This document shows, in pieces, positions 4,310 to 27,259 of a stretch of DNA of 64,000 bases. The notes beneath the pieces were generated by a model. It worked only from the letters and a program-made list of their open reading frames with translations. It was not told the origin of the DNA and did not search any database. Made by a program: the position numbers and the translations under genes. Position 1 is the first letter of the stretch. Every line of letters begins with the position of its first letter. Source of the DNA: Pavona decussata (lineage: Eukaryota); the NCBI GenBank assembly GCA_977016875.1, contig CDRNST010000104.1, forward strand, positions 3,410,001 to 3,474,000, read 5' to 3'.

Positions 4310-4875
4310 GAAACCACCTTGGTCAATTAGGTTTTCGCTGAGCTGATTAAAATGTCAACGACTCTTTTTAGTTGGTGCGACACTCTTGAGAGAATTAAGT
4401 GTTAGAGCAATTTGTTTCACATGGACACTTTGTTAGTCAACAATACGACCCGCAAACTACGAGCAGTTTATGACTGGTGGTGTTTGTGGCAAGTAATTGG
4501 GAAAGTTTTCGACTATAAAAAGAAAAATGTTTTAAAAAGGCAAACCAATTTACGTCGGTCAATCATGTGTTTAATGAGCTGATCAAATTGACAAACACTC
4601 TTCTTTGTTGGTGTAACAATACTGAGGGCTTTATGTACTTGAGCAAGTGTTTGTGTCAAGTAATTGGGAAAGTTTTCGACTACAAAAAGAAAAATGTTGT
4701 AAAACGGCAAACCAATTGATGTCGGTCAATAATGTGTTTATTGAACTGATCAAATTGTCAGCCACTCTTCTTTGTTGGTTAAACACTACTGAGGGCTTTA
4801 TGTATTTGGGCAATTTGTTCAACAATGGCTACCTGTTAGACAGCGACACGACCCGTAAACCACGATTAGTTTGCT
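4310..4875. repeat. Degenerate tandem duplication, ~167-bp unit, 2 clear copies plus 1 partial
   Basis: caagtaattgggaaagttttcgacta...tactgagggctttatgta occurs at ~4490-4640 and ~4657-4805. gcaatttgtt...acgacccg occurs at ~4407 and ~4810. Confidence 0.8.
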
Positions 4876-6053
4876 AATGTAGTTAGCAGGTGGGAATTTT
4901 TGTCAATTAATTGAAAGTTTTCTTGAATCAAAAAGTGTTTGTTTTGACGAGTAGCTTTATTTTTGTATGGTACACGATATACAATAAGAGTTTTAAGAAT
5001 ATTGCGACATTTGTTTATATTCCAACTTCACCCATATGCTGTTAAAAACATGTGCTAGTGTAAAGCATGTACGACAGAGAGAAGCTGATTCTCGAAAGGC
5101 ATGCGCCATGCGAAGCGTTACGACATGCAGGGAAAGGGGCAAAGGACAAGAATATTTCCATGAAAACAGGCGTCTTTCTACTCACTTTCATCTGGAAATT
5201 CTTGCCGCTGATGTAGCTAAAATGAACTACATCAAATCAATTGACGGGCGTTTAAAACCAAATCATAGCGAAGCTCACCCTTGCTGTTGTCTGAAGAAAA
5301 ACACTTTAACATGTCAGGTGTTTGCTTTTGGCGTTATTGCAAAATTAAGCTAAGTAAAGCGCCCATGAATATAAAAAAGTTTGCGAATTTGGCCAAAAAA
5401 AAAAACCACACACACGCACACAACAAAATTAAGAAAGCACAAATTTATTAAACTCATGTTCAAGGGTCCTAAGAGGAGAAGAACGGCTTGAAAAGATCGT
5501 CTAGATCATTTCATTTAATTTGTTTGGAATTATTTTAATTGCCTAATTACCTGCTCACTTCTCAGATATCATACAGTTGTAATATAGAACAAATTCATTC
5601 ACAGGAAAAATCCACTTACACCAGTCATATCTACTGGCTTAACGCTAGCTTAGCAAACAGATATCCGGAAATCATTCCATTTGCACCAGATATGATATGC
5701 TTATCCCTATATCTCGTGTTTGCACTGCATAACATACTCTGAGCTTAAGTAGTCAGTGAATATATGCAATGATTGAATATGTAAGCTGGCTGCATTAAAA
5801 GAAAAACAAAAGAAAGAAAAAAGATTTGAGAATGAAAGACTTGTGTGTTGCATTTAGTGTACCTAAGAAAAGAACAGTGGTTGAAGGGGTCTGATCTATA
5901 ACCTTTCGATACCAATGCACTACTTGACTCAATCGAGCGATGAAACGAACTCGAGAACTGATCCTCCTCCGTGAATTCGAATTTATGGCCATAAATGCTG
6001 GATAAGTAAAACTGAATACACGAACTGATCACATAGTACTAAGTTTCGCTTCA

Positions 6054-6374
6054 CAGGGGCGCTTCCCATTCACCCAAAATTTCGGTCTAACCAGTCGAAA
6101 TGCAAATGGAACTCGCGGAGCAAACAGAAATTTCCTGGAACAAACGAAAGACCTTCTGATGTACCCCACTTTTTCCGTCCTAACCGGTTAGAATGGAAAG
6201 TGCTATTCCATTTGCACAAAGTTTCCATTACCTCGTTGTTTTATTCTTACGCCATCATTGCGCCTTCGCAGTGAGAGATCAAGTTTGGAAAAAATGGATA
6301 AAAGACTTTCCATTTGACACGGGAGGTTTCCTGAATTTGCAATCAAAATTTTGGCTTAATGGAAAGCGCCCCTG
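6054..6374. mobile_element. MITE / non-autonomous DNA transposon (~320 bp)
   Basis: Imperfect terminal inverted repeats caggggcgcttcccatt...ccaaaattt and aaattttgg...aatggaaagcgcccctg. No coding capacity; TSD not clean. Confidence 0.7.
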
Positions 6375-11300: not shown

Positions 11301-14300
11301 AATGGCATGACCAAAAGAAACGTTCATGATGACTACGATTTTATCACGTCAAGGGATGGTGCAAAACAAAAATTAATTTACACAAGTGTGAATTCTGGTG
11401 GGATAAGTAAAAGAGACAGCGCTACAGATTACAACAGATACATTCACAGCATATGGAACCATAAAGTCAAACGAGAAGCTGGTGATTTAAAAAACGGAAC
11501 AGAGAAGAAAAAGAAGAAAGACGTCGTTGTCAACCGCCCTCCTATAATTTATCATCCTCCACCTGAAATTTACCACAGGCCAGACATAGTGGTACATCGC
11601 CCTCCTCTTGTGATTCACAGGCCACCCATTATATACCATCAACCACCAGTAATAGTTCATCGACCAGCCGTGGTGTATCATCAACCACCGATTGTATTCC
11701 ACCAACCTCCCCCTGCAGTTAGCCAGCCTTTGCTGTATTCTCACGACTCTTTCACTGTTCATCCTACGTTCTTTGCTACACATCATGGTTCTGTTGTGCG
11801 AGACTTCGGGCACTATGTAGGGGTTCCAAATGTCATCACTAATTACGGAAACCCACTTTTTGGGAGAGGACCGCCCATTGGCAAGAGATCAAAGATAGAA
11901 ACGCCAAATTCAGTTAACGAAACTCTATCGAAAAGCTCAAATTCAACGGGGACTACGTCCAAGAAAGCCACAATTCAAGACAACAAGAAAAAAGAAAAGA
12001 ATGACACTAGTGAAAAAGCAAAGAAAAAGAACACTGTTTTGGTTCATAGGCCTCCAATAATTTATCACCCACCCCCTGAAATTTATCATCGGCCTGTGAT
12101 TGTGGTACATAGACCACCCATCATGATTCATCGGGCACCAATATATTATCATCAGCCGCCGGTGGTTGTTCATCGTCCTGCTATAGTGTATCACCAGCCG
12201 CCGCTGATATTTCATCAACCACCTCCAATGGTGCATCAGCCAATACTAAGGTCCCACGATACGTGGATATCTCACCATGTGGTGGTTCCTTACTCCTCAA
12301 GTGTTATGCATCACCACACCTACGTTGGCGTGCCTGACGCATTTACCGTTCATCACTTCGCAGGAGGACACAGCTTTTATAAGTCAGACATTTTAAGGCA
12401 TAACGACCGAGATAATGAACGTGCATCTGAAAGAAATGAAATAACTGGTAAGAAAACGTCGACGGAAAAACAGAAAGATTTACCCAAGAAGCACAAAATT
12501 ACTTCACATGATAAAACCAAACACACTTTGAATCTCAAAATTAAGAAGGCGGCTGCTCAAAAGGGCGGAAAGAAAAACGCAGTCATAGTGCGACGTCCTC
12601 CAGTTATTTACCACCCACCACCAGAAATCTACCACAGGCCAGAAATAGTAGTTCATCGCGCTCCTATTGTAATTCATCGAGCTCCAATAATTTACCATCA
12701 ACCTCCTGTGATTGTACATCGACCTGCTATTGTGTATCACCAGCCGGCGCTCATATTTCATCAGCCGCCACCTATTGTACACCAACCGTTTTACAGATCA
12801 CATGACACCTATGTCCATATGCCAGTTGCGAGACTATACTCATCTCGGATAAACCATTTAGGACACACGTACCACATTCCACACGCCTACTACCACGGTC
12901 ATGGTGGTGTTATTCACCATATGGCTTATGACAAATCTAAAGTACCTCAAAAGCAGCATATTAAAGACGAAAAAGGGGAGACAAGGACCACTGTTAAAAA
13001 GAGAAAGAAGTCAAAAACAGAGAAAACTAGCCATCATGCAGAAAGAAAGCATGCCACCTTAACAAAAAGCAAAGACAAAACAGAAACAGGAACAAAACTT
13101 CACAAGAATCATAAAATTCTTTACCATAAGGCAAAGGAGACTACAGAAAAAGCAAACAAAAAAAACTCTGTAGTTATACACCGACCACCAATCATTTACC
13201 ATCCACCCCCAGAGATTTATCATCGCCCAGACATCGTAGTGCACCGCGCTCCTATAGTTCTCTACCGTGCTCCGATTGTGTACCATCAGCCTCCAGTGGT
13301 GGTTCATCGTCCAGCCATTGTTTATCACCAGCCACCTATCGTTTTCCATCAGCCACCGCCTATGGTCCACCAGCCAGTTCTCCACTCACAAGATACTTGG
13401 GTGACCAAACCGGTAGCCATCCCATACGCATCTCATGTACATCACATAGCCACCTACAGGGGTGTTCCCCACGAAGAGATCTTTATGCATGGGATTGGCA
13501 CAGGAGCGTTCGGAAAATCCAGAGTTCCTGTTAGAGGGACCCGCAGAAACAAGATAGATAGTGTTGGCGATGAGAGAAAGAACCAAACAGACAACAAAGA
13601 AACAAAGGAAGCGAAAAATTTGAACGAGTCGAATGATAAAGGGAAGAATCGTACAACGAGAGCTGCATACAGTGAAAAGCAAGGTAAAGATACAATAGGA
13701 GCAGCAGAGAGAATAATACGAGCATTAACGGATTCACTTACAGATAAACGATTGGAATTTATGGTGAAGAAGAATCCCATTGGAGTTGGTGCAAGAATCC
13801 AAAGAAGCCTTCAAAATATATTCCCTGTGTATGGAGACTCTTTATCACTAACTGCCTCAAACCCTCATAATTCAATCAAGATTCCAGGACAATCTGTCGG
13901 TGCGGTAACGAGAATTCAACGATCCAACGGTGCCTTTTGGAGTCCGGTGGGTGCTGGTGCTAGGATACGGAGGGCCGTAGCAGAGCCATGGAACACTCTT
14001 GAAGGTGAGAATCCATATGAAATGAATAAACGTAGTAGTGAGGAAAGTGAAAACCCCTCTACACCTGACGAAAATGCAGACAAAAACACTAATAGCACCA
14101 AAAAGACAATACTTATAATTCGCAGGCCACCGATACTTTATCATCCACCAAGCCACATGATCCATCGACCATCCATAGTTGTTCACAGGCCGGACATTAT
14201 AGTCCACCGTCACCCCATCGTCTTTCACAGACCACCAATACTAGTTCATCGTCCCCCAATCATAATCCATCGCCAACCAGTACTTATTCACAGGCCGCCA

Positions 14301-17300
14301 GTAATAGTTCATCGACCGCCATTGGTGTTTCACCGGCCACCTATAATTATTCACCGTCGTCCTTATATTATTCATCATCATCCTATTCTGTTCCATCGAC
14401 CACCAATTATTATACACAGGGGACCGCAAATGATAGTGCATCACTCCCACCTAATTCATCATTATCCTATGCACATGATACACATGCACTGTCCTGGTTG
14501 TGGTTTTGGAAAATCCACCGTTGCACGATTGCAAGGTAAAAGAACTGATCAAGACGGTAAGAAAACATCAAATTCAGACAGACAACATAAAGACGCTACT
14601 GTCAAGGACTCCCAACGGAAAGATTCTAACCTGCCAAAACGCTCTGTTGCAGACAAGAAGTTAAAGAAAAGTTCCCGAGAAGAGGACCATAACAAAAAGA
14701 AGAAAGACGGACACAAAAAGAAGAAAGACGTAGTAGTCAATAGACCCCCGATTATTTACCATCCGCCACCAGAGGTATACCACAGACCAGACATTGTTGT
14801 TCATAGGGCTCCCATTCTTATTCACAGGCCACCTATTGTATACCATCAACCTCCTGTTGTAGTTCACAGACCAGCGGTTGTTTATCACCAACCACCCATT
14901 GTGTTCCACCAACCTGCACCGGCAGTGAATCAACCTCTGCTATTCTCACACGATAGTTTTGTTGTACATCCTATGGCTTTTGCATCCCACATGGGATCTG
15001 TTGTAAACGACGCTGGTCATTATGTTGGTTTACCGCACGGTGGAGTAACTAATTACCCAGGTTCTATATCCCATGGACCAACAGGACACATCATTCCTTA
15101 TTTAAATCCACCCAACTGGTCAAGAAGAGCTCAAGTTTCTAAACCGCTGGACGAAAAGCATACAAAAATCAACCATGGGAAGAATAACAAAGACCGGAAA
15201 CGTTCCTCTGGGACGACTGATGGCACTCACAGAAGAAGCGCAGGAAACAGTAGGAAACTTGTAATACAGGAAAGCAAGGAGACCAAAGGTGAGAGAAAGA
15301 ATAAAGTTATCGTTGCACGACCACCTCTGATTTATCACCCACCACCTGAAATTTATGATCGCCCAGACATTATTGTACACAGACCAGACATTGTGATCCA
15401 TCAACCCTCAGTTGTGTACCACCAGCCATCTGTAGTAGTCCACAGGGCACCGGTGGTTTATCATCAGCCTCCTGTTGTATTTCACCAACCAGCTCCAATG
15501 GTTAGCCAACCAGTGTACCACGCCCATGACACGTACATGGCACACCCCGTATATCATCCGCAAGAGAGCCACATTTCGCACTCTGCAACATATGTAGGAG
15601 CACCTCATTACTACCCAGGATACAACAGTTACGGATGGGGCTTACAAGGGAATATACCCACTGCACATATACAGCCAACTCCACAGATCCCTCAATATGG
15701 TTATACAACTGGTCCTACTCATCCTGGTTTCAGTGGATACACACCATATTCAGCCTCCCTTGGAAATGCCTTCGGAAGATCAAAGGTAGAAAATAAAAAG
15801 AAAGATAAATTTAAAGACAAAGAGACAAAATTGAAAAATGCTACCAAAAAGGGTCGTACGAGCAGGTCCGTGGAGTTAAGCAAACGTCACGTGCATCACC
15901 ATCATCATCACCACCATCGTCACCATCATCATGGCATTCATTATCGCGGAAGGAAACGCTTTTATCCTCTCCATCCAATGGCATCCTTTGCCCATCCAGG
16001 ACATCGCAAACATGTCGTCATTATACACCAACCTCCTTTGATATATCATCCACCGCCGCAAGTTTATACTCGGCCAGACATACTCATGCGTTTGCCTCCG
16101 CTTGTTTACCACAGGCCAGCGATAATGTTTCAACAGCCACCGACAGTAGTCCATCACCCCCAAATAGTTTATCACCAACCTCCCGTAGTCTTTCACAACC
16201 CTCCTTCAATAGTACACACACCAGTTATTCACACGCGCGAGATGTTGTCACCTCACCTTCAGCATGTAATGATTCCAACATCATCGTACATGCACTCTGT
16301 TGGAAACTTTTTTGAGCCTGGTGTCTCAGGTACGGCATACGGAAAGGCTCACATAGAGCGAACCGACGCAAGCAAAGACTCTTTGAAGAGCGAAGCTGAT
16401 ATGGAGACGAAAAGCAAGAACAAGAATGAAAAATCACACGAAAAGCGAGACGTTTCTAACGAACCTGAAAAAGAAATGAAAGATACGAAAATATCAAAGA
16501 AACAGAACGTTGATCTTGTAGTCCACCAGCCACCAGTGATGTATCATCCGCCACCGGATATCATTGACAAGCCAGCTGTTGTAATGCACCAACTTCCGAT
16601 AGTCGTGCACCGTCCGCCCATACTCATACACAGACCTCCTGTTGTGGTCCACAGCCCCCCAGTGATAATACACAGAGCTCCAATTGTACTTCATGACACA
16701 GCACCCGTGTATCATGTACCACATGGCAATTTCTTTCATCCAATGCGCTATGCTTTTGGAAAATCCACAGTAGAAGGCGAGAATCAGCAGCGAAACAAGG
16801 ACAAGCACAGCAAGGAGAAACATGATGAAAAGACCAGCCAGACGAAAGGCGCCAAACATTCAAATACTGAAAAAGCAAAAAGGAAAAACACCGTTCTTGT
16901 TAATAGGCCTGCGATGATATACCACCCTCCACCGGAAATCTATCATCGACCAAACATTATAGTACACCGCCCAGACATAGTCATACACCGACCATCAATT
17001 GTGTATCACCAGCCTTCCGTCCTTATTCACAAACCTCCCATAATCTATCGTCAGGCACCAGTTGTTTTCCACCAGCCTCCACCAATGGTGCATGAACCAA
17101 TTTTGCATGCACACGACTCGTACCTTGCATACCCTGTTGCACTGCCATACACATCACACATTCATCATGCAGCAACATACGTTGGGGCTCCACACTTTTT
17201 TGATCAGCCACATTTTGGTGGATTTGGTGGATATGTGGGGCATGCTTTTGGAAAATCGGAAGTTGAGGAGACCAAGAAAACACACCGCAGTGATGAAAAG

Positions 17301-20300
17301 GAAAGTAAGAACAAAAAACATACCAACACTGAGGTTAGAAAAAATTTAAGGTCAACGCGTGATGTGGACTCTGAAAAAACAACTAAAGAAAATAAAAAGT
17401 CAACCTCCACGGTCAGTTCTAAAGGGCACAAAAAGAACAAAGTTGTTATAAACAGACCGCCATTAATTTACCACCCGCCACCAGAGATATATGACAGACC
17501 AGATGTAATTGTTCATCGGCCGGATATCGTCATTCATCGTCCTTCTATTGTTTATCACCAATCATCAGTAGTTGTCCACAGACCGCCAATCGTATATCAA
17601 GCACCTTCTGTGGTCTTCCATCAACCGCCACCATTGGTGAATCAGCCCATAATGCACGCTCATGAAACTTACGTTGCTCATCCAGTACCAGTGCCCTACA
17701 CATCCCATATCCAGCACACATCAACCTATGTTGGTAGCCCACACCACTATCCTGGTGGATGGCACTATGGTTGGAGCCAACCTCAGCCGTATGGATTTAC
17801 CTGGAGTCAGCATCAGCCATTTGGTTTGGCATTCGGAAAGTCAAATGTGCCCGCAGCAAAGCTAAAGTCTTCAGGGAACCATAAGCCCGCAAATAAACAT
17901 AAAGTAAAACGAGCGGAGAAAGATCAAGCCAAAAAAAATGACAAAAACATAAGCCCAAAGTCTGAAGGGACCGGTAAGAAGAAAAACCAAGTACTTATAC
18001 AACGACCACCTTTGATATACCACCCACCGCCAGACGTGTACCACAAACCTGATATAATTGTGCACAGACCTGACATTGTTATCCACCGGCCTTCCGTGGT
18101 TTATCACCAGCCATCTGTTGTGGTTCACAGACCACCGGTGGTTTATCATCAGCCGCCAGTTGTTTTTCATCAGCCATCTCCAATGGTTAGTCAGCCAGTT
18201 CTACATGCACATGACACTTATGTCGCCCATCCATATTTTACGCCCTACTCATCCGATGTATATCACTGTGGAAGCTACGTTGGTGCTCCGCACTGTTATA
18301 ATGGCGGATGGGGGGAACACGGATATGGCTTTGCCCATGCCTTTGGAAAATCAAAAATACAAGTGGCTAACAAGAAACAAAAGCACCAAAAATACAAAAG
18401 CAAAGATCTAAAGGGCCACCGCAGAACCCTTGAGAAGGAAATCAAGGAGGCGGTGGATGAGATTAAATTAAAGAAGGAGGCCAAAAAGGGGATAAGGGCG
18501 AAAAAGAAGAACCTCGTCATAATGCGTCGGCCTCCTCTAGTCTATCACCCACCACCGGAGATTTATCACAAACCGGATGTCATTGTGCATAGACCCGATA
18601 TTGTCATCCACAGGCCTTCTGTAGTTTTCCACCAGCCTTCGGTTGTAGTTCATAGACCACCAGTAATTTATCAACAACCTCCAGTCATATTCCATCAGCC
18701 AGCACCCATGGTTCACCAGCCTATCCTTCATTCACATGACACGTATTTCGCGCACCCCCACTTTGTCCCGTTTGCGTCGCACTTACATCACGCAGGCAGC
18801 TACGTGGGTGCCCCACATTTTTATCCAGGAGGATGGGGCTTAGGAGGGCACACTGATGACTTTCACCACGCGTTTGGAAAATCAAAAGTCGAAAAATCGT
18901 CAAAACAGCATGTGAAGAGTGACCACGAGAATAAGGACGGAAATGATGACGATGGGGAGAAACGTTCTCCACCAGAGGCAACAGACTCTTCTGAGGAAAA
19001 TAAGCATAAAGGCAAAATTAAGGAAGCCACAAAAGGACACAAGAAAAACTTAGTAATCATGCGTCGGCCACCACTTATTTACCACCCGCCTCCAGAAATA
19101 TATCACAAACCAGATATAATTCTACACAGACCGGATATCGTTATTCACAGACCGTCAGTTGTTTTCCATCAACCATCCGTGGTGGTTCATAGACCACCAG
19201 TAATTTACCATCAGCCGCCAGTTGTTTTTCATCAGCCATCATCAATGGTACACCAGCCTATCTTCCATTCACACGAGACGTATGTTGCTCACCCTCATTT
19301 TGTGCCATATTTGTCCCACTTAACGCACGCTGGGTCTTATATAGGGGCACCACACTTTTTCCCAGGACACTGGGGACCAACACATGGGTTCGGACATTTA
19401 GCGGCACATGCATTTGGAAAATCCAAAGTAGAAAAAGCTGCAAAAAAAGTAAATACAAAAGCTGTGACTCCAAGAGCAAAGTCAGAGGAAGCTGTGCATT
19501 TTAAAACCAAACGAGAGGCAAAACATGAAAACTTGCATCGTGACTTGTCTGGTGTGAATCAAAAGGCAAAGCTAAAACAACAGTATTGGAAAGCCACGGG
19601 AGAAAAAGCAGAAAGAAAGGCTGTCCATTTACATCCCGAAAAGGAGACTAAGAAGGGTCACCATAAAGCACACAGAAAAAACTTAGTCCTGATACAACGT
19701 CCAGCTTTGATTTATCATCCGCCACCAGAAATCTATGACAGACCAGCTATCATTGTTCACCGACCCGATGTCGTCATTCATCAACCTTCCGTGGTTTACC
19801 ACCAATCTTCGGTGGTTGTCCATCGTCCACCAATTATATATCGCCCACCACCAGTAGTATTCCATCAACCAGCACCAATGGTACATCAGCCTATGTACAC
19901 TTCCCACGACATATATCATAGTCATCCGCACTTTGTCCCATATGCCTCTCATATCAAGCACACACAAACCTACGTAGGAGCACCGCATTACTACCCTGGA
20001 GGATGGAGGTATGGCTACGGCTTTTCTGAAGCCTCTATACCTCAACACGCTGGATTAAATGGGTGGAATGCATTTAACAGTCCATGGTATCAACCATCAC
20101 TTTACAGAGCGAATTACCTTACACCAACTGGTGTAGCATCGCCCAGCGGTATCCGCAGAAGATACCAGTCAGCATTTGCCAAGTCTGATGTTCAAAAGCA
20201 CGATGCGAAAACCGAAGACTTGAAGGACAATCACAAGAAAAAAGACGAAGGTAGCCAAAAATCGCATCATGTTCAAGAAAAAACAGGAAAACGAAATCGC

Positions 20301-23300
20301 CGCTCAACCGAGTCAACTAAGAGACGCCAAGGAAAGGGGCGCAAAACGGACGAAGGAGGCAAGAAGAACGTAGTAATGATAAGACGGCCTCCACTTGTGT
20401 ACCACCCACCTCCAGAGATCTATCACAAGCCAGACGTAATTGTGCATAGACCTGATGTAGTTATTCACCAGCCTTCTGTGGTATACCATCAACCTTCAGT
20501 TGTGGTTCACCGTCCACCAGTTATTTACAACCAGCCTCCGGTGGTATTTCATCAGCCAGCTCCCATGGTAAACCAACCAATTTTTCATGCGCATGAAAAC
20601 TACATGGCCCACCCTTACTTTGTTCCTTACGCAAGTCAGATCCATCATACTGGTACTTACGTTGGAGCTCCTGAATTCTTTCATGAAGTAAGGGCCTTTG
20701 GAAAGTCAGACGTTTCAAACAACAAATCAAAGTCTAAGAAGCCACACGAAAAGTCTGAAAAGAAAAACAAAATGGTGAAAATAGATAAACGAAAGAGCGC
20801 CAAGGGAATGGTTTTCCATCCACAAGAAGAAAGAGAAGAAAAACCATCAAGAAAGAATGACATAGTTGTTAGCCGTCCTCCTATTATCTACCACCCACCA
20901 CCAGAAATTTACCATCGGCCGGATATTGTAGTTCACAGAGCTCCTATAGTGCTTCACCGCCCACCGATAATCTATCACCAGCCACCAGTAGTTGTGCATA
21001 GACCTGCTGTCGTGTACCATCAACCCCCAGTAGTCTTCCATCAACCACCTCCCACAGTTCATCAACCCATTCTTCATTCTCACGATTCATTTGTTGTCCG
21101 CCCAGCCGCCAAATTCTTTCCACAAGGCTCTACGTTAACACATACCATGAATTATGTGGGAATTCCTAACCATGTAATACATGGTGATGAACTAGCGTTT
21201 CACCACTTTCATCGATCACAAATAGAACATTCTGGTAGAGATACATCGTATAAGAAGCCATCAACTGTCCAAGTGGCGAAATCGACCATCTCTAAAATAC
21301 CTACAACTAACAAAGAGAATACTCAAACAACCATAACAGACCAAACGCAAAAGAAGACTTTGCGATCTATCATACGTCACCACAAATTAACTAAAAGACA
21401 GCTCATTGGTTCACATTCACTTTTTGGATCCTTTTCTCCTATAAACAACATTCAAGATTCTGAAAAATCGGTTGAGCAGAACGAAAAGCTGTCAACTATA
21501 CCCGGAGATACATCAATTCGTGAAAATAGCATTGCCAAGAGGCAACTTATTGCACCAGAATCTATCGAGAGTGTCTTCCCTAACTTTATGCGCAACTCTT
21601 TACCCTCAGTTTACAATACACTGGAGATGGCAGCTTTGCAAAACCAAGCTTTAGCAGCCTCTGAGGACTCACCAGTATCAGACAAGGTTGACCAGGTACA
21701 TTTGCCTGGTTTTACACCCACTTTACCAACACTTCATGGTATAGGAAGGTCTGGAATTGAACGGTACCCTTTTCTTTTAAAACATTACCTGCCAGGAGCT
21801 CCAAAAGATGACTCGCCGGACGTACGCGTTCACATAGAAACAGCAAAGTCCTCTATACCGATTAAAGCACGTGGAAAGCGGCAGATTATCCCTATATTTC
21901 AGCAGCAAGAACCACCACAAGCATATCCAGCACTCTATCAGTCGCCAGGTCTTGAGAATTTGGAAGGGGCTATCCGCGAAGCTACACCTTCCTCCGTTTA
22001 CCGCCTCTTCAGTCCATACAATGCGATGAGTCATCCAGGTGCAGATCCATATCACTATCTACGAATCCCTTCCGCGTCATTGCATCATCCTCGCGTCAAT
22101 ATCAACGTGCAGTCAGCAAGATCTACGATACCTCACATTGGCCATGCTATTCAAAAGCGATCAAACAACAAAAAGTCAAAAAGACAGTTTTTGGCGGTCA
22201 TGCCACCTCTCTCTTCCCGTTTACCCGTTGGCTTAGGGGGTGGGATAATGCCCCTCCCTTTCTCACCTTACTCGGCCCTGTCCCGTTTCCCATATCCACT
22301 TTTACCCCGTCTAGACTATCCTCAAGAACCGGAAACCGAAGAAACCGCATTCACAGAAGCTTTACCAGTTCTTCCTCGTCCATCATCAATTCCTCATACT
22401 CCATACAGCGGATTTTCAGAAGACCAAGACAATGACTCACCGTCATTCAATCCAGTGGCTTCATACTTAGCTGCACTTTATAATGGCTACTTTGGGTACC
22501 CATTTTATCGTCCCCATAAAAAACCTAAAGTCCACGTGGAGGTACACGCATCAAAATCACAGATACCCAAAGTCACAGAGAACAGGAAATACGGTCATTC
22601 TCGTATTTCTAAACGGCAACTGTATAATTTCTTACCACGTTCACCAGTAATCGCAAATCACTATACCTTGCCTGCAGCTTTAAATTACGGAATACAAGGG
22701 TTTCACCAGAATTCTCCGCATGTAAGCATTAACGTAGAAACAGCAAAGCGTCAAGGAATTCCTTCATTGTTAAAGGAAAAGAGGTCCCCAGTGGCAAAGA
22801 AGTTAAAGCAACACGAACAAAGAAGAACTGGAGATAAAAGAGACCAGCTTTTACAAAACGGAGAAAATGGTCAGGAATCTTTTCCATACCAAGAAAACTC
22901 GAATTCTGTTGCAACACAGGATAATCAGTTTGTTATTTCAAGAGAAAGCAGTCAACCACAAGAGGAGATCGCTACAAACAACAACGAGATCGCTCAACCA
23001 CTAGCGCAACAGCAGCTTCTGCAAGAAGCGGCTGGGCAACAGCAAGAGCAGCAAGAAGCAGAACAGCAACAAGAAGAGCAGCAACAAAGACAGCTTGAAC
23101 AACAAGAGCAGCAACAGACCATAGTACAACAACCAGAACCTTTTCCCAACCAACTGACAATGGAACCGTTCCAAGCTCAGCAGCTAGCTTTTCGGGCACC
23201 ACTGACTCCAATGCAAGTACCAATGCAGCCACCAGGGCAACCAGCTTTTAATGCACCTTTTGTGGCACCATTTATGGCTCCTGTCCAAGGTGTGTTCCCT

Positions 23301-26300
23301 GGCGTATTACCTGGAGTTTCAGGCAATCATGTTGCCGAACAGGCTATTGCACAACCAGGATCGAATGCTGGAGAAGGTCAACCGAAGCATACCTCAATTA
23401 ATGTTAACGTGGCCGCCAAATCTATCGTTCCAAAGAAAACTTCAAAGAAAAATAAAAAATCCCACAATCCGAAATTTACAGCTTCACAACGAAGAAATAT
23501 TCCTAAAAAGTCTGCGATGGAAAAAGGGTTTGAAAAGCGCGAGAGGATTTCTCTTTTAACGCGCTTTCCTGCAATGCAAGTATTGCCCCAAACGTTTAAG
23601 CAGGACGGCGTATTGATGCCTGCTTTCAATACTTTACCGGTTAATCACAGAATCAAGGGTAATGGGATGCTCTTGGAAGAATTACAAAGGCAGAGAAAGC
23701 ACCAAATTCCAAAAACAGCTAAACATAATGACAGAGGCAGTCAAACAGACAAGGAAAACAGTGAACAAGTCAAACCAAAGGAAAACGCAAAAAAACGCCA
23801 GTTCTACGGCATCTCGCAATCAATGCTAACATCTCAACCATATGTATTAGCACCACAACCTAAAATCCATCTAAGACCCAAAGTTTCAGTCAACGTGGAA
23901 GTCAGTAAGAGAAAGTCTGCGTTTCCAAACGGAAAATTTCATTTAGAACTTAAAGATGTAGAAAGTGGGTTTAATCGCAACGAAATGAAACCAGAACGGC
24001 GAGTGTCTGGAATAGAACAGAAGATTCAAATGCCAAATGTGGATACGCCTCGAGTGCGTCAGATTCCCTCGAAAGTGCAGCGACACAGAGTGACAGTTCA
24101 TGGAGAAAGAGCAACAAAGAAGGGAGTGAGACAGCAAGTACTCAAACGAGGACAAAACAGCGACAAAAAACGGCAAATATACGGCTTTTCGGAGTTACCA
24201 AATCAGGGTTTAATGCAGCCATTGTCGTTAGGCAGCCAAAATGAACCGCTTGGATATTTACCTAGAGCACTACACAGTCCACGTATTTCTATCAATGTTG
24301 AGGCGTCAAAGCGATCACCGGACCCTTCACATGATGTCCAAAAACGCCAACTGCTTGGTCTACAACCCGATGCCAAGGAAACCCTAGATCAAGCTCAAGA
24401 ACCCGTTCCATCTGGGCAACCAACATATCAGTCGGATGACCTAGTTGCGGAAGATGCTGCACAGTTACCTATCCAAGTACAAGATCAATCCCGGGAAAAT
24501 GAAGTATCGCCTATGGCTATTGAATCAAATCCCACAATGACACAACAACAGCAAGTCCAAGACCTATCACCAGATAGCTTAGAACCTCAGGATGCTTTAA
24601 CTGATATCTTTAATAAGCGTCCACGAGTTTCTGTTCATGTGGAGGCTTCGAAAAGAGGGAAAAACGAAAGGAAACTACGAAGTGCTTTAAATAGAAAACA
24701 ACGCAGCGTTAAAGAAAAAACGGGCGGCAAAAGACAATTTCAACAAATGGAACAAGGGGCGAGAGATTATGGGCCTTATATGCAAGGACAAAGACCTGTC
24801 ATGGATACTCAGCAGTTAGTGGTCGAACAACAGCAACAGCAAATTTCTCAGCCACTGGATTTTATTTCCCCTGTTGGTCAACAACAGAATGTTGAACAAT
24901 TTCAGCCAGTAATGTTTCCAGTTGCGCAGCCAGGGGAGGCAAAAGCGAGACCAAAAGTGAGCATAAATGTTGAAACCGCAAAGTCTTCCATATATGGACA
25001 CAGTGACCATTCAAAGGAATATGGATCGGAAAAGAAAACGAAGCGACAACTGTTTGGCACCGTACCCCTTCTTAGTTCCCTTGGACAAACAACAGCACCT
25101 GGTGATTCACGAAAGATAATTAACCCAAGGTCATCTGTACCCCTCTTAACGGAGAAACCTGCAGACAAAAAAGATCTGCGATTGCGGAGAAGACAGCTTT
25201 ATAATTATCTAGGAGGCCAACAGGAACAGATTCTTCCTACCCAGGCGATACAAGATACCACTGAGTTTGAACAACAACAGCAAGAACAACAACAGGACAT
25301 ACCAATACAGGCATCTCAACAGGATGTTCCTGTAAACCTGCAGCAAGCCTCTGTATTGGAATCAAGTAATCAGTATCAAGGCCAAATAGAGGAACCAGAA
25401 AACAGTCAGACAGCTCCTGCCATACCCACTCAACCTGAATCATCATTTAACCCTCTTGGTACAATTCACCGTCCTCGTGTGAGTATAAACGTTCAAACAG
25501 CTAAATCAAAAGTGCCAAGCATGATGAAAGCCAAAATACCAAAATCAGAAAACAAAGGATCTAGTTCCCAGGACCACGAAAAGAAGAAATTCAAAAGACA
25601 GTTTGATATCCTTGGTGGCGGTGGTGAAATTGAAAGACGGCGGCGCCCAAAGTTTTTGACAGCACCACCATTAAAGAAAGGGCGGGGTGAAAACCTATTC
25701 GGTTTGGGCACTAATGTGAACAAGCCCGTTGAAGTCTTTGCAAATCCAATCGCGAACCTTGTTGCTGGACGAAAAAGACCAAAGTTTGGGGGAATTCAGA
25801 TCGATAGTCCCACAGATGTTGGAGCTTTACGGCTTAAAGGAGGTGCCAACCCTTTAGGAGGTGCCCTCGCTTCTGATGTGGGTGCACCACCTATAATTCA
25901 AGACAGTGCCGCAGCGGGAATTGCCCCATTTGTTCAGGAACCTGCAGCGACTGGCAGTAATCCTTTTTTACCTCCGAGTGGTATCGCAGGGCCTCAAATT
26001 GATGCTCTTGAAAAAGGAGACACTGGTACCTTACCAATAGCTGGACCTCCTTTGAACAGACCAGCAATTATTCCGTTACCTGCTCTCAATCAGGCTCTCT
26101 TCCAAAACTTGCCTTTGGCAACTGCTACAGGACCACCTACGGAACGTCCTCTACTACTTTCTCCACGAGTGCTTCCGCTAGCCCCAATCCTACCAATGGC
26201 AGTACCACCTCCACCACCACTGGCAGTACCACCAGAAGCAGTACCACAACCGCTACAGACTCTAGATGAGGCAGGACCAGAGCTGCAACATGATCCTCAG

Positions 26301-26507
26301 ATTGGAGCCGTACTCCCACCAGTAATTCCCATGCCATTTCCGAACATTGCAGCACCTCCGCCACTTCCCAAACCAGAGACCTTGATCCCGGAGTCCGACG
26401 ATGATAAACCATCGGTGCATGTTAATGTGGAAACGTCGAGATCGCATGTTCCTGATACGAAACATCATTCCAAGCACCAAGCGACTGGCCGAGCCAATCG
26501 TGGCTAG
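8331..26507 (+). CDS. Giant single-ORF secreted His/Pro-rich modular polyprotein precursor (cluster gene 2, 6058 aa)
   Basis: An 18,177-nt ORF with no internal stop. Signal peptide MFGRSPPNILATSVVCFLLFLQFQWSPTQA, 18 His-Pro heptad modules, ~14 C-terminal modules mostly opened by KR-Q, many dibasic sites, and AATAAA at 26810. Confidence 0.93.
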   Translation: MFGRSPPNILATSVVCFLLFLQFQWSPTQAKPYSKQEFLSTYTAGNLGGVREEDWPEFVNYNNGQNIERSKRSPTEVEDETLDSLVEKTLSVRARKRQGIETPIQPLNSDSPLDLPHFSTEEHVRSKVNQPDSESVGVTVEEEKKADDDISSTKDSKGGDNNVKPATGNESNELHQDENVSSSNENLNNNKQRGTENKENLAAQDKSDSSKVSLNTDSSTDNKNSKDTGESKADLSRSVDENAQVRTVQGTSQINKIGNIPNDKSGSKSTPLDNDQSSSVTASTKTNQQEIQTTNTNNANKQQVDTDVSKPTAAKPETSGLVSSNQKPAAPSEQRPPTNSQLSEESKPINTVPQIKNEPEEPVRDALGNSGSEIVTTHSPREPEPELDSYSERSAEAKPSNGPEVGHFQVDDKSADLEINANSAGVKVKAKPASLQVVSRPGSHAASGAQERSLFGHYHYPPYHVHHHWYPGLRRSYGHFHRRHFFNPYPPFPERRSFERFYDEAPFYRRRLHYWYPHRHRHHFPDSYLYERSQLEEPEEPLRYRRRRRHKRRFRHMNGPYRRQFYNNIPITNGMESTPMGVPPEEGTMPQLPIGPLQPFAQRQNIITPMPPPINVAGNPPPGLLGGMNAENFPMNEMSNFNGINQVNGAFNGMGNMGTTGFNSPEQIGAIEGLPVGMNGGLEGMQAAEQTPGITRELPNRKTLAEEPRKAFKKTAIVSGKKDNHTTTKEHSHDQNTALKNKHSEEGKKMQTTGSTKKAKINLKSWEKTLKRYHRLNKFTSKSHEKHQFRRSTKSSSLDSETKNTEGKVLQKHRISHLHSQRAKDTKGKRKNEIIMHRPPIIYHPPPEIYHRPDIVVHRAPIMLHRPPIIYHQPPVVVHRPAIIYHQPPIVFHQPPPMVHQPILRSHDTWVTKPVVYHTASTVSHDKTYFGVPSHVYTGSYGEGCHGGHCSYRKGSVPHRNNSQATLHKIKTKRDSLSDYMAYFTSLWKANGMTKRNVHDDYDFITSRDGAKQKLIYTSVNSGGISKRDSATDYNRYIHSIWNHKVKREAGDLKNGTEKKKKKDVVVNRPPIIYHPPPEIYHRPDIVVHRPPLVIHRPPIIYHQPPVIVHRPAVVYHQPPIVFHQPPPAVSQPLLYSHDSFTVHPTFFATHHGSVVRDFGHYVGVPNVITNYGNPLFGRGPPIGKRSKIETPNSVNETLSKSSNSTGTTSKKATIQDNKKKEKNDTSEKAKKKNTVLVHRPPIIYHPPPEIYHRPVIVVHRPPIMIHRAPIYYHQPPVVVHRPAIVYHQPPLIFHQPPPMVHQPILRSHDTWISHHVVVPYSSSVMHHHTYVGVPDAFTVHHFAGGHSFYKSDILRHNDRDNERASERNEITGKKTSTEKQKDLPKKHKITSHDKTKHTLNLKIKKAAAQKGGKKNAVIVRRPPVIYHPPPEIYHRPEIVVHRAPIVIHRAPIIYHQPPVIVHRPAIVYHQPALIFHQPPPIVHQPFYRSHDTYVHMPVARLYSSRINHLGHTYHIPHAYYHGHGGVIHHMAYDKSKVPQKQHIKDEKGETRTTVKKRKKSKTEKTSHHAERKHATLTKSKDKTETGTKLHKNHKILYHKAKETTEKANKKNSVVIHRPPIIYHPPPEIYHRPDIVVHRAPIVLYRAPIVYHQPPVVVHRPAIVYHQPPIVFHQPPPMVHQPVLHSQDTWVTKPVAIPYASHVHHIATYRGVPHEEIFMHGIGTGAFGKSRVPVRGTRRNKIDSVGDERKNQTDNKETKEAKNLNESNDKGKNRTTRAAYSEKQGKDTIGAAERIIRALTDSLTDKRLEFMVKKNPIGVGARIQRSLQNIFPVYGDSLSLTASNPHNSIKIPGQSVGAVTRIQRSNGAFWSPVGAGARIRRAVAEPWNTLEGENPYEMNKRSSEESENPSTPDENADKNTNSTKKTILIIRRPPILYHPPSHMIHRPSIVVHRPDIIVHRHPIVFHRPPILVHRPPIIIHRQPVLIHRPPVIVHRPPLVFHRPPIIIHRRPYIIHHHPILFHRPPIIIHRGPQMIVHHSHLIHHYPMHMIHMHCPGCGFGKSTVARLQGKRTDQDGKKTSNSDRQHKDATVKDSQRKDSNLPKRSVADKKLKKSSREEDHNKKKKDGHKKKKDVVVNRPPIIYHPPPEVYHRPDIVVHRAPILIHRPPIVYHQPPVVVHRPAVVYHQPPIVFHQPAPAVNQPLLFSHDSFVVHPMAFASHMGSVVNDAGHYVGLPHGGVTNYPGSISHGPTGHIIPYLNPPNWSRRAQVSKPLDEKHTKINHGKNNKDRKRSSGTTDGTHRRSAGNSRKLVIQESKETKGERKNKVIVARPPLIYHPPPEIYDRPDIIVHRPDIVIHQPSVVYHQPSVVVHRAPVVYHQPPVVFHQPAPMVSQPVYHAHDTYMAHPVYHPQESHISHSATYVGAPHYYPGYNSYGWGLQGNIPTAHIQPTPQIPQYGYTTGPTHPGFSGYTPYSASLGNAFGRSKVENKKKDKFKDKETKLKNATKKGRTSRSVELSKRHVHHHHHHHHRHHHHGIHYRGRKRFYPLHPMASFAHPGHRKHVVIIHQPPLIYHPPPQVYTRPDILMRLPPLVYHRPAIMFQQPPTVVHHPQIVYHQPPVVFHNPPSIVHTPVIHTREMLSPHLQHVMIPTSSYMHSVGNFFEPGVSGTAYGKAHIERTDASKDSLKSEADMETKSKNKNEKSHEKRDVSNEPEKEMKDTKISKKQNVDLVVHQPPVMYHPPPDIIDKPAVVMHQLPIVVHRPPILIHRPPVVVHSPPVIIHRAPIVLHDTAPVYHVPHGNFFHPMRYAFGKSTVEGENQQRNKDKHSKEKHDEKTSQTKGAKHSNTEKAKRKNTVLVNRPAMIYHPPPEIYHRPNIIVHRPDIVIHRPSIVYHQPSVLIHKPPIIYRQAPVVFHQPPPMVHEPILHAHDSYLAYPVALPYTSHIHHAATYVGAPHFFDQPHFGGFGGYVGHAFGKSEVEETKKTHRSDEKESKNKKHTNTEVRKNLRSTRDVDSEKTTKENKKSTSTVSSKGHKKNKVVINRPPLIYHPPPEIYDRPDVIVHRPDIVIHRPSIVYHQSSVVVHRPPIVYQAPSVVFHQPPPLVNQPIMHAHETYVAHPVPVPYTSHIQHTSTYVGSPHHYPGGWHYGWSQPQPYGFTWSQHQPFGLAFGKSNVPAAKLKSSGNHKPANKHKVKRAEKDQAKKNDKNISPKSEGTGKKKNQVLIQRPPLIYHPPPDVYHKPDIIVHRPDIVIHRPSVVYHQPSVVVHRPPVVYHQPPVVFHQPSPMVSQPVLHAHDTYVAHPYFTPYSSDVYHCGSYVGAPHCYNGGWGEHGYGFAHAFGKSKIQVANKKQKHQKYKSKDLKGHRRTLEKEIKEAVDEIKLKKEAKKGIRAKKKNLVIMRRPPLVYHPPPEIYHKPDVIVHRPDIVIHRPSVVFHQPSVVVHRPPVIYQQPPVIFHQPAPMVHQPILHSHDTYFAHPHFVPFASHLHHAGSYVGAPHFYPGGWGLGGHTDDFHHAFGKSKVEKSSKQHVKSDHENKDGNDDDGEKRSPPEATDSSEENKHKGKIKEATKGHKKNLVIMRRPPLIYHPPPEIYHKPDIILHRPDIVIHRPSVVFHQPSVVVHRPPVIYHQPPVVFHQPSSMVHQPIFHSHETYVAHPHFVPYLSHLTHAGSYIGAPHFFPGHWGPTHGFGHLAAHAFGKSKVEKAAKKVNTKAVTPRAKSEEAVHFKTKREAKHENLHRDLSGVNQKAKLKQQYWKATGEKAERKAVHLHPEKETKKGHHKAHRKNLVLIQRPALIYHPPPEIYDRPAIIVHRPDVVIHQPSVVYHQSSVVVHRPPIIYRPPPVVFHQPAPMVHQPMYTSHDIYHSHPHFVPYASHIKHTQTYVGAPHYYPGGWRYGYGFSEASIPQHAGLNGWNAFNSPWYQPSLYRANYLTPTGVASPSGIRRRYQSAFAKSDVQKHDAKTEDLKDNHKKKDEGSQKSHHVQEKTGKRNRRSTESTKRRQGKGRKTDEGGKKNVVMIRRPPLVYHPPPEIYHKPDVIVHRPDVVIHQPSVVYHQPSVVVHRPPVIYNQPPVVFHQPAPMVNQPIFHAHENYMAHPYFVPYASQIHHTGTYVGAPEFFHEVRAFGKSDVSNNKSKSKKPHEKSEKKNKMVKIDKRKSAKGMVFHPQEEREEKPSRKNDIVVSRPPIIYHPPPEIYHRPDIVVHRAPIVLHRPPIIYHQPPVVVHRPAVVYHQPPVVFHQPPPTVHQPILHSHDSFVVRPAAKFFPQGSTLTHTMNYVGIPNHVIHGDELAFHHFHRSQIEHSGRDTSYKKPSTVQVAKSTISKIPTTNKENTQTTITDQTQKKTLRSIIRHHKLTKRQLIGSHSLFGSFSPINNIQDSEKSVEQNEKLSTIPGDTSIRENSIAKRQLIAPESIESVFPNFMRNSLPSVYNTLEMAALQNQALAASEDSPVSDKVDQVHLPGFTPTLPTLHGIGRSGIERYPFLLKHYLPGAPKDDSPDVRVHIETAKSSIPIKARGKRQIIPIFQQQEPPQAYPALYQSPGLENLEGAIREATPSSVYRLFSPYNAMSHPGADPYHYLRIPSASLHHPRVNINVQSARSTIPHIGHAIQKRSNNKKSKRQFLAVMPPLSSRLPVGLGGGIMPLPFSPYSALSRFPYPLLPRLDYPQEPETEETAFTEALPVLPRPSSIPHTPYSGFSEDQDNDSPSFNPVASYLAALYNGYFGYPFYRPHKKPKVHVEVHASKSQIPKVTENRKYGHSRISKRQLYNFLPRSPVIANHYTLPAALNYGIQGFHQNSPHVSINVETAKRQGIPSLLKEKRSPVAKKLKQHEQRRTGDKRDQLLQNGENGQESFPYQENSNSVATQDNQFVISRESSQPQEEIATNNNEIAQPLAQQQLLQEAAGQQQEQQEAEQQQEEQQQRQLEQQEQQQTIVQQPEPFPNQLTMEPFQAQQLAFRAPLTPMQVPMQPPGQPAFNAPFVAPFMAPVQGVFPGVLPGVSGNHVAEQAIAQPGSNAGEGQPKHTSINVNVAAKSIVPKKTSKKNKKSHNPKFTASQRRNIPKKSAMEKGFEKRERISLLTRFPAMQVLPQTFKQDGVLMPAFNTLPVNHRIKGNGMLLEELQRQRKHQIPKTAKHNDRGSQTDKENSEQVKPKENAKKRQFYGISQSMLTSQPYVLAPQPKIHLRPKVSVNVEVSKRKSAFPNGKFHLELKDVESGFNRNEMKPERRVSGIEQKIQMPNVDTPRVRQIPSKVQRHRVTVHGERATKKGVRQQVLKRGQNSDKKRQIYGFSELPNQGLMQPLSLGSQNEPLGYLPRALHSPRISINVEASKRSPDPSHDVQKRQLLGLQPDAKETLDQAQEPVPSGQPTYQSDDLVAEDAAQLPIQVQDQSRENEVSPMAIESNPTMTQQQQVQDLSPDSLEPQDALTDIFNKRPRVSVHVEASKRGKNERKLRSALNRKQRSVKEKTGGKRQFQQMEQGARDYGPYMQGQRPVMDTQQLVVEQQQQQISQPLDFISPVGQQQNVEQFQPVMFPVAQPGEAKARPKVSINVETAKSSIYGHSDHSKEYGSEKKTKRQLFGTVPLLSSLGQTTAPGDSRKIINPRSSVPLLTEKPADKKDLRLRRRQLYNYLGGQQEQILPTQAIQDTTEFEQQQQEQQQDIPIQASQQDVPVNLQQASVLESSNQYQGQIEEPENSQTAPAIPTQPESSFNPLGTIHRPRVSINVQTAKSKVPSMMKAKIPKSENKGSSSQDHEKKKFKRQFDILGGGGEIERRRRPKFLTAPPLKKGRGENLFGLGTNVNKPVEVFANPIANLVAGRKRPKFGGIQIDSPTDVGALRLKGGANPLGGALASDVGAPPIIQDSAAAGIAPFVQEPAATGSNPFLPPSGIAGPQIDALEKGDTGTLPIAGPPLNRPAIIPLPALNQALFQNLPLATATGPPTERPLLLSPRVLPLAPILPMAVPPPPPLAVPPEAVPQPLQTLDEAGPELQHDPQIGAVLPPVIPMPFPNIAAPPPLPKPETLIPESDDDKPSVHVNVETSRSHVPDTKHHSKHQATGRANRG
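10815..21227 (+). repeat. Coding array of 18 His-Pro heptad modules within gene 2
   Basis: Recurrent core RPPIIYH-PPPEIYH-RPDIVVH-RAPIVLH-RPPIIYH-QPPVVVH-RPAVVYH-QPPIVFH-QPPPMVH-QPILHSH-D, separated by Lys-rich spacers. Confidence 0.95.
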
Positions 26508-27128: not shown

Positions 27129-27259
27129 NNNNNNNNNNNNNNNNNNNNNNNNNNNNNNNNNNNNNNNNNNNNNNNNNNNNNNNNNNNNNNNNNNNNNNNN
27201 NNNNNNNNNNNNNNNNNNNNNNNNNNNNNNNNNNNNNNNNNNNNNNNNNNNNNNNNNNN
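27129..27259. other. Assembly gap (N run)
   Basis: Run of N. Confidence 1.

Follow-up and report, generated by a model that had tools for sequence, protein, structure and literature searches.

The 64,000-nucleotide window analysed here (Pavona decussata assembly GCA_977016875.1, contig CDRNST010000104.1, positions 3,410,001 to 3,474,000 of the forward strand) contains a giant gene that consists of one uninterrupted open reading frame (ORF) on a single exon and encodes 6058 amino acids. Approximately the last third of the protein, from K4355 of the first K-R-Q to the stop codon, is a C-terminal zone built on a repeated grammar: units that begin with a Gln directly after a dibasic pair, Pro/Gln-rich bodies, and a 12-residue strand-like tag that is conserved and closes most of the bodies. 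This grammar is almost certainly real and under selection. The giant protein is quite likely a cnidocyte product and, with slightly less assurance, cleavage between KR and Q with conversion of the exposed Gln to pyroglutamate (pGlu) is probably the rule. The reading that combines these observations, a convertase-processed cnidocyst polyprotein whose tags serve as amphipathic beta-strand assembly elements, has about an even chance of being correct.

The zone contains 13 [KR]RQ sites, and the residue that follows the Gln is Leu, Phe or Ile at 12 of them. Gln occurs after 12 of the 22 KR sites in the zone compared with an overall Q frequency of 0.098 (binomial P = 2e-7), which upholds the claim of a first-pass annotation of this DNA that modules start with KR-Gln. 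The unit heads are QLIG, QLIA, QIIP, QFLA, QLYN, QFYG, QIYG, QLLG, QFQQ, QLFG, QLYN and QFDI, each a Gln joined to hydrophobic or aromatic residues. Every head named in that annotation is present, but its list was incomplete, with QLIG at residue 4357 and QLFG at residue 5573 omitted. Cutting the zone at [KR]R/Q yields 13 units of 45-349 amino acids each. The unit bodies are P/Q-rich and net acidic, with a summed composition of 5.8% K+R, 10.0% D+E, 12.7% Q and 13.4% P. The tag closes the body in 10-11 units and is followed by S-x-[IV]-P and then by a basic spacer that runs up to the next K-R; the short spacers are 31% K+R. The sequence G-K-R is found at the end of two spacers only (ARGKR and TGGKR), and the unit ends are tags and not Gly. 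The P4 residue before the KR/Q cut is not consistently basic, and the site is therefore not a classical furin R-x-x-R site. There is no Cys and no Trp in the 1704 residues of the zone. The protein has a leader and at least three units delimited by conserved Lys-Arg, which is the layout of a convertase/Kex2-type repeat polyprotein. A Pfam-A search with residues 4355-6058 returned no family at E <= 0.1. In the His-Pro part upstream of the zone, Chorion_3 scored 21.5 and 20.4 bits, a weak and compositional match under the 22-bit cut-off, and Cuticle_3 scored 29 against a cut-off of 27.1, but no single stretch passed.

The strict expression [PT].[VI].[IV].[VI]..[AS][KR][SR] was used to locate the tags and matched 10 copies. 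An eleventh copy, HTSINVNVAAKS at residue 5020, is genuine and is shifted by one residue, so the eleven tags listed in the first pass all stand. Shuffling the zone 20,000 times gave a mean of 0.00075 strict tags and a maximum of 1. A profile scan detected a degenerate twelfth copy, TVQVAKSTISKIP at residues 4312-4324, immediately upstream of the zone. The tag consensus derived from 62 instances in seven species is R-P-x-V-S-V-N-V-x-T-A-K-S. Tags 4, 6, 7 and 8 (numbered as in Table 1) form a dibasic-ended subtype that runs directly into K-R, and the subtype is position-specific in the orthologues. The KRQ at residue 4806 sits within tag 4 and is not conserved, being KKN in 7 of 13 orthologues. 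The final tag lies 4-25 residues from the C terminus in every complete orthologue read, with an acidic run before it. Six-frame translation of the window confined the tag core to the frame of the giant ORF, bar one chance match. The back-translated DNA pattern of the commonest tag form had 6 matches in the 602-Mb genome, all within the giant gene, and the reversed control had 0. Allowing one mismatch added one more giant-gene tag, a stop-containing repeated element and a few singletons, and the reversed control then had 8 matches. A DNA-level repeat or gene conversion was rejected as the source of the tag similarity: the codons differ between tags and between orthologues, and Tandem Repeats Finder reported a Gln-rich array only.

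Full-length orthologues of 4548-6329 amino acids are present in many stony corals, including Stylophora pistillata (PFX26305.1) and Oculina patagonica (XP_078359399.1). In 13 coral orthologues, identity to the residue in the window was 0.81 for the tags and 0.84 for the [KR]RQ triplets, compared with 0.63 for the six residues after KRQ and 0.45 for the remaining zone. None of 20,000 permutations with random sets of eleven 12-mers attained the identity value of the tags. Ten of the 13 KRQ sites are retained in at least 11 of the 13 orthologues, and individual tags hold their own identity at their own position. The module bodies had been described as variable, which holds for the zone outside the tags (45% identical) but not for the approximately eight residues after each KRQ or for two conserved islands. 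The first island, at 23544-23705, is conserved above the level of the tags: many of its alignment columns are invariant in 13 species, and Nematostella has it too. In the orthologue P0079 the tags are 86% identical versus 51% outside the tags, and one third of the identical tag residues are encoded by a different codon. These substitutions therefore indicate selection at the protein level rather than at the DNA level.

The Nematostella vectensis carrier of the tag, LOC116618347 (XP_032237783.2, 5019 amino acids), extends the comparison to sea anemones. Identity to this protein was 55% for the tags, 36% for the KRQ heads and 23% for the rest. There is a one-to-one match for 8 of the 11 tags and for heads such as Q[LM]FGTVPLL, QLYN[YF][LV]GG and QFYG, and the grammar is therefore older than the split between sea anemones and stony corals. 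Tags and KRQ sites are under purifying selection at the protein level in stony corals and sea anemones alike. The N-terminal domain of the giant protein is also identical in the printed N terminus of Nematostella NVE24290. A role in the calcification matrix is unlikely because the whole grammar is kept in non-calcifying anemones. A 30-column tag profile was searched against all of 1.84e9 representative proteins and matched 14 proteins. The eleven new matches were read and all have the grammar of the giant gene, and several also have His-Pro repeats, the N-terminal domain or the final tag with its acidic run; on this evidence they are apparently orthologues of the giant gene or pieces of it. 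The tag is restricted to one gene family. The named carriers, which include Actinostola KAK3703960.1 in addition to the N. vectensis protein, are all hexacorals. In a distant relative (ENA ERZ25072724, a 1.22-Mb contig) the C-terminal zone is 27% identical and is called as a separate 1683-residue gene (P0081) that directly follows pieces of 2058 and 305 residues, and the giant gene appears to have been split there by the gene caller.

Published peptidomics data bear on the processing of the units. Thiel et al. (2024, eLife, PMC11087051) performed LC-MS/MS (liquid chromatography with tandem mass spectrometry) on acid-methanol extracts of Nematostella. Supplementary file 1 contains a 5017-residue precursor, NVE24290, with two peptides annotated 'Pyro-glu from Q'. 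One peptide has 46 residues with KR on both flanks and was recorded in adults with a -10lgP of 44.67 and a mass error of 2.7 parts per million (ppm). The other has 37 residues with KR and RR flanks and was recorded in larvae with a -10lgP of 28.89 and a mass error of 2.0 ppm. In XP_032237783.2 (P0103) the two peptides occupy residues 3661-3706 and 3944-3980, respectively. The former is the exact counterpart of unit 1 in the window, which is also 46 residues long with KR on both sides, and the latter corresponds to the head of the window unit beginning at Q4763. The prediction that the N-terminal Gln of the modules cyclizes to pGlu thus found support in mass spectra, from two identifications that carry the grade 'poor'. 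Each of the two peptides has a dibasic site at either end, which counts in favour of the identifications, and PMC11087051 states that dibasic cleavage sites in Nematostella are often followed by Q. The remaining 44 mentions of NVE24290 in the supplementary file belong to a similarity matrix. Cleavage products were seen in the orthologue for 2 of approximately 12 units, by low-grade identifications; we infer processing at the remaining sites and the carry-over of the anemone results to the coral. Capping with pGlu after dibasic cleavage in cnidarians would then not be confined to neuropeptides.

The cell type was assigned from the expression of the anemone orthologue. Sunagar et al. (2018, BMC Biology, PMC6161364) used an NvNcol-3::memOrange2 reporter line and sorted its tentacle cells. 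NVE24290 is 26th in the 'Positive Cells' list of Table S1 of that paper, with 160 versus 3092 counts, which is a 19.4-fold increase. The paper describes the positive cells as a population with many young developing cnidocytes, in which expression of known capsule genes is raised and that of neuronal markers lowered. The orthologue is therefore transcribed in developing cnidocytes. In the same list, carboxypeptidase D (NVE22019) ranks second by enrichment. NVE24294 and NVE24289 are up 18.8-fold and 14.9-fold in Table S1; their numbers are close to NVE24290, and they may be the anemone counterparts of genes that neighbour the giant gene in the window. In the coral, the zone is present in several sequencing runs of the source organism, with no joints in any run compared. 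Contigs of two coral metatranscriptome RNA libraries contain the zone at ~95% identity, and one contig covers all 5115 bases. This coverage agrees with an intron-less, transcribed exon, although contigs from RNA libraries are no proof of transcription. The gene is present in the literature as rows in two supplementary tables only, with the main texts of PMC11087051 and PMC6161364 silent. Literature searches by accession, LOC number, NVE number and peptide strings found no main-text mention in any paper, and the gene is not present in the supplements of the matrisome paper.

The mechanism proposed from these data starts with the giant gene producing a secreted polyprotein that would be made in developing cnidocytes and delivered to the growing cnidocyst. 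A Kex2/PC-type proprotein convertase would cut after each conserved Lys-Arg in the C-terminal zone, the new N-terminal Gln would cyclize to pGlu, and a carboxypeptidase would trim the basic tails. This sequence would release about a dozen P/Q-rich, intrinsically disordered units, with a predicted plan of a pGlu-[LIF]-[YFL]... head, a strand tag near the C terminus in 10-11 units, and a Lys/Arg-rich spacer. Following dibasic trimming, tags 4, 6, 7 and 8 would be the very C terminus of their units. The tags would then pair units strand to strand into insoluble capsule, tubule or adhesive material. We infer this strand-pairing role of the tag tentatively and hold it to be somewhat more doubtful than probable. 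A more specific form, in which pGlu heads and strand tags are complementary ends and the units polymerize head-to-tail or by cross-beta into a material found only in the cnidocyst, is unlikely; its product may be the spirocyst adhesive fibril web or the capsule/tubule matrix. If true, such polymerization would represent a self-assembly system not described before, specified by a single giant gene and retained since anemones and stony corals last shared an ancestor.

The sequence properties of the tags distinguish them from the bulk of the zone. All tags have a beta propensity of 1.10-1.26 versus a mean of 0.95, with V/I alternating with S/N/H/E, and in a ranking of the zone by 180-degree hydrophobic moment several tags stand near the top (ranks 3, 4, 8 and 12 of 1698 windows). 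They qualify as an amphipathic strand-forming sequence of the cross-beta/functional amyloid-like type, and these scores, which are computed from the residues, fit an amphipathic strand in need of a partner. Searches of PDB sequences with two profiles, that of the tag and that of the gene 4 family (gene 4 is a neighbour in the window), gave no significant match. The best PDB matches to the tag profile, all non-significant (E 0.26-0.78), were antibody heavy-chain variable domains at residues 66-83. The ESM Atlas gave no usable match for the zone and, for gene 4, sub-threshold look-alikes (<=0.81) described as 'prisilkin-39-like' and cuticle proteins.

Several results weigh against a processed polyprotein assembled through its tags. 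The AlphaFold2 model of residues 4480-5560, built with 13 orthologues, is disordered, with a mean predicted local distance difference test score (pLDDT) of 33.4, and draws only 2 of 9 tags (5 and 6) as strands, at low confidence. The model of gene 4 with 20 homologues has a pLDDT of 45.7, and its N-terminal domain is unfolded at a pLDDT of ~44. The sole part of the zone with any AlphaFold2 confidence is the Gln/Glu-rich run at 22990-23140, a helix with a pLDDT of up to 71, and the island at 23544-23705 is drawn as short strands and a helix with a pLDDT of ~40-57. The grade 'poor' was given to both NVE24290 identifications by the authors of PMC11087051 and denotes an ion ladder with gaps longer than 3 residues or peaks of low intensity; the peptide evidence is therefore supportive and not conclusive. 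Peptides of NVE24290 that bear a tag, another head or a spacer were not found in the supplement of that paper. The detected 46-mer retains an internal K-K-S-T-I-P uncut, which leaves no support for a cut at the [KR]-S-x-[IV]-P ending. The evidence for processing and for cell type derives from a sea-anemone orthologue and not from the Pavona coral, and literature searches by every identifier found no cnidocyst proteome or in situ data for the giant protein.

The same features were weighed against other explanations. A tag that acts as a handling signal and not as a self-assembly strand, on units still released at KR/Q, is rather doubtful; the signal may be a cnidocyst-vesicle sorting or packaging motif, an endoplasmic reticulum chaperone site or a docking site for a modifying enzyme, for example for cross-linking at the invariant Lys of A-K-S. 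BiP-type chaperone sites are heptads with alternating hydrophobic residues. A signal of this kind would explain why conservation runs past the strand into [AS]-[KR]-S-x-[IV]-P, which is common to the His-Pro modules, genes 1, 3, 4 and 5 and the upstream polyprotein, and it would agree with the 20 copies of the ending [KR]S.[IV][PEA] in the protein versus 1.7 expected and with the AlphaFold2 model, which has no intramolecular sheet. However, the polar face of the tag (S, N, E/Q, T) is conserved more than a simple hydrophobic chaperone site needs, and the full P-x-V-x-I-x-V tag is confined to the giant gene whereas a general signal should recur in co-expressed neighbours. It is quite unlikely that the cnidocyst carries the released units as soluble cargo (for example adhesive peptides, venom accessories or counter-ions of the poly-gamma-glutamate matrix), with the tags and basic spacers used for packing. 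The soluble species seen were two tag-less peptides only, the same polypeptide has 18 His-Pro modules of structural character, and its composition and the language-model look-alikes (<=0.81) weakly suggest structural proteins of the matrix/cuticle type. Yet the counterpart of unit 1 came out of the acidified-methanol extraction of PMC11087051 as a free peptide of 46 residues. The absence of Cys for disulfide cross-linking, the alternation of basic spacers with acidic bodies and the occurrence of all named orthologues in hexacorals are also consistent with cargo. Hexacorals are the group with adhesive spirocysts, and only hexacorals have them.

The remaining alternatives concern the cleavage itself. 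A single giant extracellular matrix chain, in which most KRQ sites stay uncut and KRQ and the tags are conserved for binding, would account for mass spectrometric support of low grade at only 2 of 12 sites and for the KR and KK sites within units that are clearly left uncut. This is very unlikely: both detected peptides bear pGlu and have their two ends precisely at dibasic sites, the full K-R-Q triplet and not a mere basic pair is kept in more than a dozen orthologues, Q often follows the dibasic sites of Nematostella (PMC11087051), and carboxypeptidase D ranks second in enrichment in the same cells (PMC6161364). The weakest rival, a precursor of neuropeptides or hormones, is highly improbable. 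The first-pass annotation had compared the module starts with cnidarian neuropeptides, and the leader, the repeated dibasic sites and the N-terminal Gln do recall such a precursor; the gene was included in a neuropeptide-candidate database. Cnidarian preprohormones (for example those of pyrQGRFamide and pyrQITRFamide) likewise have dibasic cleavage followed by conversion of Gln to pyroglutamate, as PMC11087051 describes for Nematostella. The comparison fails on the size of the units, which exceed the 3-20 residues typical of mature peptides in PMC11087051, on unit ends with no Gly-basic amidation grammar, and on the enrichment of the orthologue in developing cnidocytes, a population with neuronal markers down. 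In addition, the unit ends are conserved in the giant protein versus a short repeated core in preprohormones, the identifications are 'poor', and the gene is not among the proneuropeptides listed in the accessible part of PMC11087051.

The preferred reading, a processed cnidocyst polyprotein, was compared with known systems. Precursors of cnidocyst proteins are usually processed at Lys-Arg. The sorted cells in which the orthologue is strongly enriched are also those enriched in NvNcol-1/-4, NEP-3 and a NOWA homologue, and the giant protein is secreted, of low complexity and taxon-restricted like the cnidocyst structural proteins (minicollagens, NOWA, CPP-1, cnidoin and spinalin). A minicollagen pro-peptide is mentioned in PMC12549020. 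Unlike the minicollagen/NOWA type, the zone has no Cys-rich domain (0 Cys) and no collagen triplets. The giant protein also differs from the cnidocyst structural proteins in being approximately ten times larger and in its design as a polyprotein, in which ~12 units combine pGlu heads with a strand tag. The closest analogue to the proposed mechanism is the repellent system of Ustilago maydis, in which the secreted precursor Rep1 is reportedly cut at Lys-Arg into structural peptides that form amyloid-like surface fibrils. Rep1 is fungal and has no homology to the giant protein, and its near-identical peptides of 34-55 residues lack the pGlu head and the strand-tail design. Profilaggrin, of the epidermal differentiation complex, is a giant single-exon His-rich polyprotein that is cut into units and is encoded in a cluster of single-exon genes for structural proteins rich in Gly/Cys/Tyr, Pro and Gln. 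The coral cluster resembles the vertebrate epidermal differentiation complex in layout, which is an analogy only: the giant protein has no S100 domain, belongs to an unrelated lineage and is secreted versus cytoplasmic.

As a secreted cnidocyte precursor processed by a convertase, the protein is of a known kind. What is undescribed is the family, with its giant polyprotein design, its head-and-tag architecture and the tag itself; no Pfam family, solved structure or paper covers them. The stinging capsule probably contains the giant protein as a building material that has not been described before. Few secretory products of any cell are as complex as cnidocysts; to our knowledge, only a handful of cnidocyst structural proteins are known, and almost nothing is known of spirocysts at the protein level. 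Few coral or anemone genes reach the size of the giant gene, which is conserved among hexacorals and highly enriched in developing cnidocytes. Its grammar provides a testable model for the conversion of a disordered polyprotein into an ordered material, and the tags provide short epitopes for localizing the protein.

Table 1. Features of the giant gene, gene 4 and the gene cluster. Positions are those of the window unless marked otherwise; residues are those of the giant protein.
Feature	Position	Residues	Strand	Remarks
Giant ORF	8331-26507	1-6058	+	Order: hydrophobic N-terminal leader, N-terminal domain, 18 His-Pro modules, C-terminal zone
Shared N-terminal domain HFQVDD...LQVVSRPG	9549-9656	407-442	+	Also in genes 3 and 4
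Degenerate twelfth tag KPSTVQVAKSTISKIP	21255-21302	4309-4324	+	Weak hidden Markov model match; conserved in orthologues
C-terminal zone	21393-26507	4355-6058	+	1704 residues
[KR]RQ unit starts	21393, 21537, 21876, 22179, 22611, 22746, 23793, 24168, 24342, 24729, 25041, 25188, 25593		+	22746 not conserved
Unit 1	21399-21536	Q4357-A4402	+	46 residues, KR on both sides, no tag
Tag 1 PDVRVHIETAKS	21816-21851	from 4496	+	SIP next
Tag 2 PRVNINVQSARS	22089-22124	from 4587	+	TIP next; identical in Nematostella
Tag 3 PKVHVEVHASKS	22524-22559	from 4732	+	QIP next
Tag 4 PHVSINVETAKR	22716-22751	from 4796	+	Dibasic pair at end
Gln/Glu-rich run QQEQQEAEQQQEEQQQRQLEQQEQQQ	22990-23140		+	Sole tandem repeat reported in the zone by Tandem Repeats Finder
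Tag 5 HTSINVNVAAKS	23388-23423	from 5020	+	One-residue offset; IVP next
Conserved island RISLLTRFPAMQVLPQTF...LQRQRKHQ	23544-23705	5072-5125	+	54 residues; within the basic stretch after tag 5
Tag 6 PKVSVNVEVSKR	23877-23912	from 5183	+	Dibasic pair at end
Tag 7 PRISINVEASKR	24279-24314	from 5317	+	Dibasic pair at end
Tag 8 PRVSVHVEASKR	24621-24656	from 5431	+	Dibasic pair at end
Tag 9 PKVSINVETAKS	24951-24986	from 5541	+	
Tag 10 PRVSINVQTAKS	25473-25508	from 5715	+	KVP next
Second conserved island KRQFDILGGGGEIERRRRPKF...	25593-25850		+	Start of last unit; Nematostella counterpart KRQLVNILKNILQRRRGP...
Tag 11 PSVHVNVETSRS	26409-26444	from 6027	+	HVP next; acidic run precedes
Gene 4	45816-47327		+	ORF; probable start 46140; family of ~365-390 amino acids
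Gene 4 pseudo-tag PQNVEINIRTHKS	46548-46586		+	
Gene 1	1664-3430		-	Cluster member
L008	1656-4304 of L008		+	Cluster member
Gly/Cys polyprotein L010	contig 3408112-3409692		-	Cluster member

Gene 4 (46140-47207) has a 45-residue N-terminal domain, GEPSHFQVDDKAAEIEVNANPAGVKVNAKPASLQVVAKPG, that is almost invariant in 20 homologues that are otherwise 30-90% identical. This gene had been credited with a tag similar to those of the zone, a likeness that reduces to the shared K-S-x-I-P ending. In the 20 homologues, the conserved part of the pseudo-tag is R-[TS]-H-K-S-D-I-P with the downstream KRQ only, and the alternating hydrophobic residues are not conserved. The tag profile gave a weak match to the gene 4 family at the pseudo-tag spot (E = 0.017, probability 2.6%) and left the N-terminal domain unmatched. 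The idea that this domain is built of tag-like strands is not supported, as hhalign picked the K-S-D-I-P region of gene 4 only. A local profile scan of genes 1, 4 and 5 likewise recovered the K-S-x-[IV]-P part only. The ending [KR]-S-x-[IV]-[PEA], in excess in the giant protein as given above, also occurs at the ends of the His-Pro modules (AFGKS.VE), in genes 1, 3, 4 and 5 and in the upstream Gly/Cys polyprotein. The module ending that is found cluster-wide and the full strand tag that is private to the zone are two separate things. The neighbourhood seems to be conserved in the distant relative that has P0081, where the gene 4 homologue is probably P0057.

The giant gene belongs to a cluster whose members are single-ORF genes; they encode secreted proteins of low complexity, rich in Gly/Tyr/Trp, Gly/Cys or Gly/Ala. 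A Pfam search of the cluster genes returned nothing usable. In gene 1 and the L010 polyprotein, modules begin after K-R (KR/C, KR/W and KR/F) and end in [FYC]-[KR]-[ST]-x-[IVL]-[PAG], with charged spacers following. Two further neighbours in the window were judged by eye to be unrelated: a 486-residue single ORF at 53138-54598 (+) that is leucine-rich-repeat-like with an EF-hand-like C terminus, and a 321-residue ORF at 62604-63569 (-). Runs of N are present at 27129-27259 (131 bases) and at 45041-45266 (226 bases), the second just upstream of gene 4.

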